A stretch of 64,000 nt of DNA. Source: Adineta vaga (Eukaryota > Animalia > Rotifera). Below, piece by piece: positions 3,116-10,435 of this stretch. The position numbers and the translations under genes were made by a program. The stretch covers positions 5,704,001-5,768,000 of the forward strand of contig CP075492.1 of assembly GCA_021613535.1 (NCBI GenBank). Reading direction: 5' to 3'. The first letter of the stretch is position 1; every line of letters begins with the position of its first letter. The notes beneath the pieces were generated by a model. It saw nothing but the letters and a program-made list of their open reading frames with translations, did not search any database and was not told the DNA's origin.

Positions 3116-4011
3116 TTAAGATTTGAGATTCGCTAACATTCGTTCAATTTCTGCATCTTCCTCATTGACTTGTCGTCGGTTGGATGCCATTCCTGTTGCA
3201 CCTGCTGGAACTCGTGGAGCAACAGCCATCTTTTCATTAAATGAAATACCAATTTCATCTAAAACTTGATTAACAATCGCATCCTCCTCGTCAGAATCAC
3301 CTTCTTGTCCGAATGCAGCATCCAATGTTTCTCCCACTGAAAGAATGATTAATAAAAATCATCTGAAGATCGATATAATACATACTCATTTCTTCCTTGA
3401 TGCCCAATTTTGTATGTTCTTGAGCAAATTGTTGAGTAACTCTAGCCATTTGTTCTGGATTCATTACTTTATTCATTTTCGCCATGGTTTTCGCGGTAGA
3501 CTAAACATACTCTAATAAATGATTTCAATCGCAATCAATTGTCATTACTAACCTGCATGGCATTTGCCATTCGTATATTCGATGCCATCATGGTATTTTG
3601 TGTCGCTAAACCTTGGATTTGGCTGGATGCTTGAAAAGATTGAGCCTTTTGATTTCGTATTTTAACCAATTGTTTCGCTAAAATTTCCACTGCCTAAGAA
3701 AGATTTTCTTATTGAAATATTCATATATCAATAAAGTATAGTTTGGTTTCTTACTTTTTTATTATTACTCGTTGCATTTTTTCGAATTTCGTTAACCTTA
3801 AATCAATATACAATTTTAAGAGTATTTCAATACGAAATATTTACTATTCGTTGTTCTTCAGCTTCAAGTTTATGACGATCACGTGTCAATTCACGATCCG
3901 TTTTTCTCAACTCACGATTGTGAGCTTTCGTTTGCTCTAGAACAACAAACAAATCTATTCTATTGCTTTGAAATTGATCTCTTTACCTGGTATAGACTTT
4001 TTGCCAAACAT
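3116..4011 (-). CDS. CHMP2B: ESCRT-III subunit CHMP2B/Vps2-like; 6 exons
   Basis: MFGKKSIP|EQTKAHNRELRKTDRELTRDRHKLEAEEQRI|..|AVEILAKQLVKIRNQK..|..MAKMNKVMNP..|..EEDAIVNQVLDEIGI..EIERMLANLKS (MIM-like C-terminus). Confidence 0.92.
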
Positions 4012-4056
4012 TAGTTATCTGAAAAATAGAACAATACAATCAGTTGGGATTTGCTT

Positions 4057-5490
4057 TTAGAACTTTGTCTTATCAATATTGTCATTTAAAGGAAAGAAAA
4101 ATTTAAAAACTCCTTCAACACAACATCCTGATGTATATTCATGTTTCGGATGTCCAGCTGATACTTCTTGACAAGCTGATCCATGTGAGAAATCATACAC
4201 TGAATCCAATTCTTCACCCATCGGTTGATCACTGGCAACAAAATGAATAGCATTCGCTTTTAAGAAAGTTTTAATTTCATTAGTTTCTAGTGGTAAAATT
4301 GAATGAACTGAATCGGTAAATGCAATTTTCCATGAATTTGATAAGATACTATCTTGACGTTTACGTAATAAAAACATCAAACCATCACCACCAGCAGAAT
4401 GTGCAACAATATAAAATTTCTTCGCTGGAGATTTTAAAATGATATTATCATAAACATAAAGAACATGTTCACGATTTGTTGAAAGATTTGGAATTTTTTT
4501 TGTTAATGGGCGCGGAAGTGGATTAGAAGATAAATAATAAGAAAGTAATTCTTCATCAGTTAGAGATGATGGATCATTAGCTGTAGTTGTTTCCTTATCA
4601 TCTGTCGTTGTAGCTGAAGAAGTTGTATTCTCGGTATCAATCACATTCTTGTCAATATAACTTGTTTGATTTGGATTAAGAATTATTACAGATAGATTAT
4701 GTTCTTTAGCTTTGGTCATATAAGGAAACATACCTAAGAAAAGAAGAACTTCATTGTTAAAATCCGATATTTTCTTATCGATTTATAAATAAGTTTATGT
4801 ATCTCTAGAACAATATCTTGTTCTAAATGTAATGAAATTAGATGACATACTTCCAATATCGAGTGATTCATTGATACAACATGAACGTGCCCATTGTCCT
4901 GGACGTACAACTCCAGAGCCTTGCAATAAGATTAGACATCCATTTTCATTCGTTTCAAAATCATCGGAAGTAAATATATTCACTTGATCATGATGATCAT
5001 CATCATCTGTATTTTCAGTTTTTTCTGGTAACCATATTTCTCTATAATTCCATGGATCACTTTTCATTAATGATTGAATATATGTATCGATACAATTACC
5101 CAATGCATTATAATGACGTTGTGAAAGAAAAATAAACTTTTCATCTGTTAAACAATGACGTAAATGATTTGAATCTTTGTACGAATAATTAAAGTCTTCA
5201 ATAGATGTTGGTGTTTTTGTTTTTGGAATTGTTAATAAAATATTATTGAGTCGAGTTTGAAGATCATTGGGTAGACGATCACGTTCAATGGGTTCATTAC
5301 AGAAGTTGCATGGAAGTTTGTGAAGAAACAATGAGCCTATTCGGCCTTTCTCAATATCTGTCGAAATCATTTTTGACCAGCATGATTCACATAGGTTGTC
5401 ATTCTTATTTGAACAACATTGATGTAATGTCACCGAATCTTCTACACAAACTGCACATGTATCTGCTATTTCAGTTGATGATCGATTCAT
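4057..5490 (-). CDS. FAM172A: FAM172/ARB2A-family alpha/beta-hydrolase-fold protein with N-terminal RING-like Cys cluster; 2 exons (intron 4734..4850)
   Basis: [54 protein letters not shown] and SAGHPKHEYTS match FAM172/Arb2 motifs; phase-1 GT-AG intron joins the two ORFs in frame. Confidence 0.88.
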
Positions 5491-8700: not shown

Positions 8701-9939
8701 TAATTCATCACCTGCCATTAATCTCATTTCTAATAGAAATATAAAATATTAACAATAGCAATAAGATATGGAATATTTCTAATCACCTTCGTTTGCTTTT
8801 GGTAAAGAAAAATAAGCTAAACGTTTTTTATTCAAACCCATATCCCATCGAACCGAGATATTTTCTTGAGTTTGAGATTCTTTAATTTTTCGATCATCAT
8901 CTGCTTCCATTTTGACCAATGGACCAAAGATATTTTGATATTGATATGCATCTTCATATCTTAAACTACATTGTTGAGGTTCTTCATCAATACCAGGTTT
9001 TTCTAAATCAGCTATTGTAGCATCGGGATTTTCTTTCCATAGTTCTTCTAAACGATTAATCATTTGTGCAGTAATTTGACGAGCACGTAATTGTTCTTGT
9101 TCAGAAGGGATTTTAACTAGCCAAGTTAGAAAACATCGATCTTGAATCAATGGTTGCCATTGTGTTGAATCCCTAAAACAACAACAAAAATTCAATTAAT
9201 ATATCTAAATTTAAAAAAAAAATTCTCTTACCAATTCATATCTTTAAGTGCACTTTGACTAGCGCATGGTTGTCGACAAAGTAGAACAACTACACTATCC
9301 GCTTTTGCTGGAATAAAACCGAGTAAAAATGCATTTCGACAACCACAATTATAACATTCTAATTGTGTTTCACCCAATGGACCATCTTTATGCAATGTTA
9401 CTTCTTTACATCGAGCACGAACAAGATGATTAACAATATGACTAAGTCGAAGTGAATCATATAAAGATTGTAATCAATAATTTCTTCTTCTCCTACCTGC
9501 CAGACGTATTTCCACGTCCATTACAAAACCATTTTTTCGTCTGATTACACATCACAACTGCTGCTGGATCATGAATACCACAGTAACTAAAATCAAACAT
9601 TAATCATTGAACTAAACAAGGTCAATTAATGTATATTTACGCGCATGCATGTTTAGGTAAATCTGTTTCATAGAAACCTTCTTCTTCATCTTCAAATGGT
9701 AAATCACGTTGTTGAATTATATTTGTACTATTACTATTTATTTCATCGAGCTCATCAACAGGAAAACTATTATTAACATCTGTTAATGGAAGATGATTTT
9801 GTTGAGAAGGTAATGTTAGATCATCGAAAGCGAAATCTGTTGCTTGTGTATTTCCAGTTGTTAAATCAGGATCATAGAAAATTAATGGATCTCGAAAACT
9901 TAATGTTGGATCTTGCGTTGTACTTGCATTATAGGTCAT
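5797..9939 (-). CDS. UPF1: Regulator of nonsense transcripts 1 (UPF1 SF1 RNA helicase), multi-exon
   Basis: [31 protein letters not shown] (CH domain), [58 protein letters not shown]-terminal SQ-rich region with LLSQDSTY. Confidence 0.98.
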
Positions 9940-10435
9940 TATTTTTCTAATCTGGAAATAAACAAATAAATAAATAAATAAGGATGATTAAGTTTCGAGT
10001 TGAAAGACAGAGAGAAAATATTTATTTTGACGATGAATGAATATATGAAATTGAAATGATTCATCATCAATCCTGACATATAAAATATGAAATCTAGAAG
10101 ATTTTACAGATAACCAATAAGAATATTTTCATGTGAGTAAGAAAAATCTTTTCAAAAAATGAAAAATAATCAGAAATTTTGATTTTATTCGAACCAATTA
10201 TTCGAATAAAAGTCTTATAAAATGAATAAAAAAATCATATGTATCCTAGCGACATCTTTTGAACCAAACTGTATCATATTTCATTATTGTTTAAATATCA
10301 AATTCATACGTTGCATTTTTCGATGATTAGTTATCTCTACTCTAACAAAAATCAGATATTTGTTGTTAATTTACTTAACAGAATTCTTCGAATTTATTAA
10401 TATATGAATAGATAAATTTCTATTAAAAAATCGTT

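Follow-up and report, generated by a model that had tools for sequence, protein, structure and literature searches.

ARB2A and CHMP2B as a candidate two-gene spliced-leader operon in the bdelloid rotifer Adineta vaga

Introduction

Rotifers have been known since 2005 to carry out trans-splicing with a spliced leader (SL), and we describe here a locus of the bdelloid Adineta vaga whose organization suggests an operon of two genes resolved by this process. The locus lies in a 64,000-nucleotide (nt) stretch of contig CP075492.1 (assembly GCA_021613535.1, positions 5,704,001 to 5,768,000), referred to below as the window, whose numbering is used for all coordinates. In it a UPF1 gene, a gene encoding an Arb2-domain protein (ARB2A) and a gene encoding a CHMP2-type ESCRT-III protein (CHMP2B) follow one another head to tail, all on the minus strand, from 9939 to 3116. 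An earlier note, made from the sequence alone, had proposed that all three belong to one trans-spliced operon.

The closest described systems are the operons of Ciona intestinalis and Oikopleura dioica. In Ciona, the cistrons are juxtaposed, the AG of the downstream gene is followed by the poly(A) of the upstream gene, and the upstream cistrons carry no AAUAAA; it was argued from this that both products require transcription across the boundary (Satou et al. 2006, PMC1488885). The ARB2A-CHMP2B pair resembles the Ciona and Oikopleura operons in that its genes lie on the same strand tens of nucleotides apart, the upstream mRNA's poly(A) tail begins right after the acceptor AG of the downstream gene, and the upstream cistron has no AAUAAA; in both, moreover, a single SL would serve monocistronic and operonic genes, and the member genes are functionally unrelated. 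Based on this Ciona-like pattern of juxtaposed cistrons, an AG followed by the upstream poly(A) and a missing AAUAAA, we favor, with moderate confidence, the reading that ARB2A and CHMP2B constitute a two-gene SL operon of the Ciona/Oikopleura type, without intercistronic DNA. The locus differs in belonging to another phylum (Rotifera, Bdelloidea); furthermore, Ciona work demonstrated that the downstream gene receives the SL and that a dicistronic cDNA exists, whereas both are only proposed here.

The operons of Caenorhabditis elegans offer a second comparison. In its SL1-type operons the upstream poly(A) site likewise adjoins the downstream trans-splice site and the common SL is used, but the characterized cases retain an upstream AAUAAA (PMC1488885), and none is present at the A. 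vaga locus. The SL2-type operons share with our reading a polycistronic precursor that is resolved by 3′ end formation and trans-splicing; however, they have about 100 nt of intercistronic sequence and a dedicated SL2, whereas here the poly(A) site and the acceptor are 0-1 nt apart, and the one SL sequence that was searched for was found.

The SLIDR/SLOPPR paper describes operons as unreported in rotifers (PMC7986045), a 2025 paper on chaetognaths names rotifers loosely, and with no data, among the lineages with trans-splicing and operons (PMC12460157), and our full-text literature searches found no report of a bdelloid operon. ARB2A-CHMP2B is a good candidate, limited to two genes, for a kind of operon already known elsewhere, in a phylum without documented operons. 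It provides a locus with a nucleotide-exact coincidence of poly(A) site and acceptor, and the pair is kept across bdelloid genera and an ancient genome duplication. It can serve as a test case for whether rotifers have operons, whether any such operons follow the Ciona pattern, and what connects operons with SL trans-splicing in animals.

Results and Discussion

The features at the boundary between ARB2A and CHMP2B, with the basis of each assignment, are the following.

5490-4851 (exon 1, ATG at 5490), 4850-4734 (intron) and 4733-4057 (exon 2), minus strand: Arb2-domain gene, ARB2A/FAM172A-like (Pfam and RNA joint)
4056-4012, minus strand: ARB2A-CHMP2B gap of 45 nt, which is the entire ARB2A 3′ untranslated region (UTR) and must also accommodate the branch point and the polypyrimidine tract of CHMP2B (sequence)
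4031-4019, minus strand: ttctatttttcag, acceptor before CHMP2B and poly(A) site of ARB2A, with cleavage after 4019 or 4018 (sequence and a contig of RNA run X5)
4011-3987, 3936-3845, 3796-3755, 3693-3553, 3500-3386 and 3336-3116, minus strand: CHMP2-type ESCRT-III (Snf7 family) gene (Pfam and RNA joints)

Polypyrimidine-AG acceptors are found 12, 0 and 7 nt upstream of the ATGs of UPF1, ARB2A and CHMP2B, respectively. At CHMP2B the acceptor AG is 4020-4019, so that an exon would begin at 4018, 7 nt 5′ of the ATG, and a TAA in frame at 4017-4015 separates the acceptor from the start codon. A scan of the 105 nt before the CHMP2B ATG, covering the 45-nt gap and the final 60 nt of the ARB2A coding sequence, found no A(A/T)TAAA. 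The gap contains two GTs, at 4037-4036 and 4032-4031; these are 19 and 14 nt from the AG, distances too short for a cis intron at a locus where introns measure 48-117 nt. The spacings on which the three-gene proposal was built (45 nt at 4012..4056 and about 306 nt between UPF1 and ARB2A), together with its acceptors, its in-frame TAA and the absence of AATAAA, were all confirmed in the sequence. It had counted only one GT in the gap, and the second does not alter its conclusion that a cis intron would not fit.

RNA evidence was drawn from Logan contigs of four runs from four studies, which are de Bruijn graph assemblies (k=31) with short tips trimmed. The contigs skip every predicted intron of CHMP2B and ARB2A with CT..AC ends, demonstrating that they derive from RNA and that the gene models are right: of the five CHMP2B introns, four were seen as CT..AC joints in all 4 runs and intron 1 in run X1 only, and the ARB2A joint was present in three runs. 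In run X5, one contig (record 7) extends from 4700 to 4018 and then continues into 20 untemplated A residues (20 T on the plus strand). Because this tail is not encoded in the genome, the poly(A) of the ARB2A mRNA must begin no more than 1 nt from the acceptor AG, a coincidence expected in about 4% of cases if the site fell by chance anywhere in the 45-nt gap. In run X1, a contig of 1399 nt (record 2) runs unbroken from 4700 through the ARB2A stop codon, the gap and CHMP2B exon 1 and, with all five CHMP2B introns spliced, on to 3042. RNA therefore crosses the ARB2A-CHMP2B boundary, as the earlier note had suggested looking for, although the bridge is one de Bruijn contig, which does not prove a single molecule.

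To place the locus in a wider context, we used the ARB2A exons as queries and recovered 13 related loci: the A. vaga ohnologue on C6 (L002/L004), A. ricciae (L023), A. steineri (L014/15), Rotaria socialis (L016) and nine metagenomic bdelloid contigs (L011-L013, L017-L021 and L024). A CHMP2 gene lies directly downstream of ARB2A in all 13, across gaps of 40-76 nt. In each of the nine orthologous loci (9/9) the motif TTTYAG/AT (the slash marking the putative splice junction) stands exactly 7 nt before the CHMP2 ATG, and in one further locus it stands at 8 nt; the remainder of the gap cannot be aligned among the orthologues. In the ohnologue group, a TTTCTAG is located 18-25 nt before the CHMP2 ATG. 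A. ricciae retains the whole UPF1-ARB2A-CHMP2 trio, with gaps of 310 nt and 46 nt. The order and spacing of ARB2A and CHMP2B are thus conserved throughout (13/13), and the link to UPF1 has been lost in some lineages.

These observations bear on the possibility that 4018 is not a trans-splice site at all, and that the U-rich tract and the CAG/A serve only for cleavage and polyadenylation of ARB2A, with CHMP2B started conventionally in or near the gap. Poly(A) addition is the sole use of the site that was directly observed, and U-rich elements can direct 3′ end formation without AAUAAA. However, a pure poly(A) site need not hold a fixed 7-nt distance to the next ATG in 9/9 lineages, the ARB2A ATG has the same arrangement of pyrimidine tract and AG with no upstream poly(A) site coinciding with it, 45 nt is too small for a promoter, and the X1 contig contains RNA that crosses into spliced CHMP2B. 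We consider this explanation highly unlikely.

An alternative that is less easily set aside, if still unlikely in our view, is that the two genes are independent and overlapping. The CHMP2B promoter would then be inside ARB2A, in its last exon or its intron, a short outron would be trans-spliced at 4018, and ARB2A would be polyadenylated at the same place with no co-transcription. The A. vaga genome is very compact, contigs cannot separate a dicistronic precursor from an outron of CHMP2B with its start inside ARB2A, and the 117-nt ARB2A intron, which exceeds the uniform 48-63 nt of nearby A. vaga introns, could hold regulatory DNA. Among bdelloids, however, the ARB2A intron, where present, measures between about 50 and about 1040 nt; it is 50-65 nt in L013, L017 and L018 and has been lost in L019-L021 and L024. 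Since it varies or vanishes with no change in the junction, these data count against a conserved internal promoter in the intron, and a conserved internal promoter of CHMP2B would have to reside in ARB2A coding sequence. Moreover, the exact coincidence of poly(A) site and AG fits, as in Ciona, a single precursor that can take either of two routes. A search for RNA contigs of relatives by way of their full-length ARB2A proteins led instead to genomic DNA from which the ARB2A intron is missing (P0106, P0108 and, judged from a short contig, P0095).

In the ARB2A ohnologue on C6, codon 148 is an in-frame TAG (L002:1040-1042), and the annotation lists two proteins for the gene, P0126 (148 amino acids) and P0029 (184 amino acids). 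The CHMP2 gene 53 nt downstream of this broken copy looks intact and, if expressed, may depend on transcription through the broken upstream gene.

The two-gene operon reading requires an SL, and the SL published for rotifers is GGCTTATTACAACTTACCAAGAG (PMC3795323). We searched for it in the A. vaga assembly (100.8 Mb, six contigs), with the reversed sequence as a control. The sequence GCTTATTACAACTTACCAAGAG followed directly by GT occurs in 42 genomic copies, as opposed to 0 in the reversed control, and in all 42 a T replaces the first G of the published SL. One gene copy, examined whole, has an SL/GTAAAT donor and an RNA body downstream of it. The premise that SL trans-splicing operates in bdelloids, which the earlier note had taken as established, is therefore borne out by SL RNA genes in this very genome. 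These genes are clustered, for example at C5:9884354-9925971, C5:10912929-10934589 and C2:8684671-8691981, among others (L005-L010), and many copies are paired head to head at a distance of about 156 nt (as at C1:2551158- and 2551314+).

Several points weigh against the two-gene operon. The poly(A) site was seen in one contig of one run. As CHMP2B exon 1 ends only 32 nt from the acceptor and k is 31, the bridging contig cannot prove a single molecule that was cis-spliced and not trans-spliced. An SL joined at 4018 or 5490 was found in no contig of the four runs, though the lack of loose SL ends is uninformative given that contig building removes short tips. A metagenome scan for the SL tail followed, after 6-26 nt, by the CHMP2B start returned a sole match (L022), which was rejected as a chance occurrence inside an unrelated coding region. 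Finally, that a single promoter drives both ARB2A and CHMP2B is something we infer. On balance, of the trans-spliced operon proposed earlier, the ARB2A-CHMP2B part has good support as operon-like (poly(A) site at the acceptor, bridging contig, no AATAAA, invariant acceptor and SL genes in the genome) and the UPF1 part is not upheld; SL addition at 4018 and 5490 we likewise infer.

The two-gene operon suggests the following model. RNA polymerase II would initiate 5′ of ARB2A, probably close to the conserved blocks around 5498-5558, and the rotifer SL, of 22-23 nt, would replace the 5′ outron at the AG that adjoins the ARB2A ATG. Transcription would continue across the 45-nt gap into CHMP2B, and each precursor would then undergo, at TTTTCAG/A (4019/4018), either cleavage and polyadenylation or SL trans-splicing. 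A cleaved precursor would give an ARB2A mRNA with a 38-39-nt 3′ UTR and no AAUAAA; a trans-spliced precursor would give a CHMP2B mRNA whose 5′ UTR is the SL plus 7 nt. This CHMP2B mRNA is predicted to read ...ACCAAGAG joined to ATAACTAATG at 4018, and SL-bearing reads would end ...CTTACCAAGAG at 4018 and 5490.

In a variant of this model, the ARB2A 3′ end would be made by the spliceosome rather than by the usual cleavage and polyadenylation machinery: trans-splicing of CHMP2B would free a 3′-OH at ...CAG, which would be debranched and then polyadenylated. We think this quite improbable. If true, one precursor would yield both mRNAs, and the nucleotide-exact cut and the missing AAUAAA would reflect a general way of resolving operons in bdelloids.

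The features that determine whether UPF1 belongs with this pair are the following.

9939-5797, minus strand: UPF1 coding region, multi-exon, ATG at 9939 and stop codon at 5799-5797 (Pfam on exons)
5796-5491, minus strand: UPF1-ARB2A spacer of 306 nt, comprising the UPF1 3′ UTR and a stretch without RNA contig coverage (sequence and RNA depth)
5558-5498, minus strand: conserved blocks ATCGATTTTGTTTGATCTTTTATT... and AAAACAAGAATTTCTTTT, candidate promoter or outron elements (alignment of six bdelloid loci)
5497-5491, minus strand: ATTCTAG acceptor (ttttattctag) directly at the ARB2A ATG, putative SL acceptor (invariant in the aligned loci)
9962-9952, minus strand: polypyrimidine-AG tttatttccag, 12 nt 5′ of the UPF1 ATG (sequence)

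UPF1 is probably transcribed separately, as a unit of its own upstream of the pair. In the four runs, no RNA contig covers about 5500-5685, some 190 nt of the gap between UPF1 and ARB2A; in every run the RNA depth was 0 in the bin 5575-5685 and at most 0.43 in the bin 5464-5574. Within the spacer, the blocks GATTTTGTTTGATCTT(T/G)TATT and AACAAGAATT(T/C) are conserved 10-70 nt upstream of the ARB2A acceptor in the window and in L023, L013, L020, L024 and L011, distant lineages among them, and they fit a promoter or outron of ARB2A's own. The acceptor is followed directly by the start codon, as TTCTAG/ATG, in 10 loci, and the longer ATTCTAG/ATG is invariant in 6/6 aligned loci. No UPF1 lies in the roughly 5 kb upstream of ARB2A in L014/15, L017 and L018, and in Rotaria UPF1 is about 700 nt from ARB2A. 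As for the UPF1 acceptor, an AG is present 7 nt before the UPF1 ATG in L013 and L004, and none is found in A. ricciae L023. A block reading TCAAAATAAATATTTT, about 75 nt 5′ of the UPF1 start codon (window about 10015-10030), is kept in L013 and A. ricciae L023 and is a possible TATA-like promoter element. The inclusion of UPF1 in the operon is therefore not supported, given the coverage gap, the blocks before ARB2A, the loss of linkage in three loci and the UPF1 acceptor that A. ricciae does not keep; nor is the functional link between two RNA-surveillance factors that the earlier note had drawn, for which adjacency is the sole support.

A three-gene operon would have UPF1, ARB2A and CHMP2B transcribed together from the UPF1 promoter, with the intercistronic region of roughly 150-300 nt before ARB2A quickly degraded. 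The two A. vaga ohnologues, A. ricciae (at 310 nt), L013 and Rotaria all have UPF1 followed by ARB2A; ARB2A begins directly at a conserved acceptor, and intercistronic RNA is generally scarce in RNA-seq. Set against these are the empty stretch in all four runs, blocks before the ARB2A acceptor that resemble a promoter or outron belonging to that gene, the persistence of ARB2A-CHMP2B in L014/15, L017 and L018 where UPF1 is missing upstream, and the wide spacing in Rotaria. Taken together, they make transcription from the UPF1 promoter a distinctly unlikely origin for the downstream pair. An AATAAA at 5669-5664 was considered as the poly(A) signal of UPF1 and is doubtful, as the contigs end upstream of this hexamer, which A. 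ricciae does not retain.

The identities of the three genes were established by Pfam profile searches run exon by exon, on single exons, and the models and coordinates check out as the three co-oriented minus-strand genes described before. UPF1 exons match UPF1_Zn_bind (CH zinc-binding, PF09416), UPF1_1B_dom (PF18141) and the AAA_11/AAA_12 SF1 helicase core (PF13086, PF13087), and the last UPF1 intron, 5931-5993, is present as a joint in RNA contigs. In ARB2A, exon 1 matches positions 2-119 of the PF22749 (Arb2) profile, and exon 2, which ends in the stop codon TAA at 4059-4057, matches positions 119-259; the model encodes 438 amino acids, equal in length to the NCBI A. vaga protein I4U23_012461 (P0092). 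The ARB2A N-terminus had been labeled a RING domain; it is cysteine-rich, but no RING-type profile matched it, and the only match was a weak one to DZR_2 (E 0.13 and 0.0084), below the cut-off.

The CHMP2-type gene has six exons, with its ATG at 4011 and stop codon at 3118-3116, and encodes 211 amino acids, as do its annotated relatives, whose product is a Snf7 protein. PF03357 (Snf7) matches its exons, every single exon scoring under the gathering cut-off, and the closest PDB chain to the product is CHMP2A (E 1e-4). Going by the human sequences, we take the gene to be probably CHMP2B rather than CHMP2A.

Neighboring genes were noted on both sides. A convergent plus-strand gene (261-amino-acid open reading frame (ORF), window 2045-2830) ends 285 nt from the CHMP2B stop codon; one contig of run X5 crosses the 3′ ends of both genes, whose 3′ UTRs may overlap. 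On the other side, a small cysteine-rich ORF (10436-10765, minus strand) lies between a seven-transmembrane (7TM) receptor gene and UPF1, and A. ricciae has an ORF at the equivalent position (L023:828-1118). A metagenomic bdelloid contig carries a large downstream gene with matches to the Pfam families ADPrib_exo_Tox and, many times over, TPR (L012:6308-7087).

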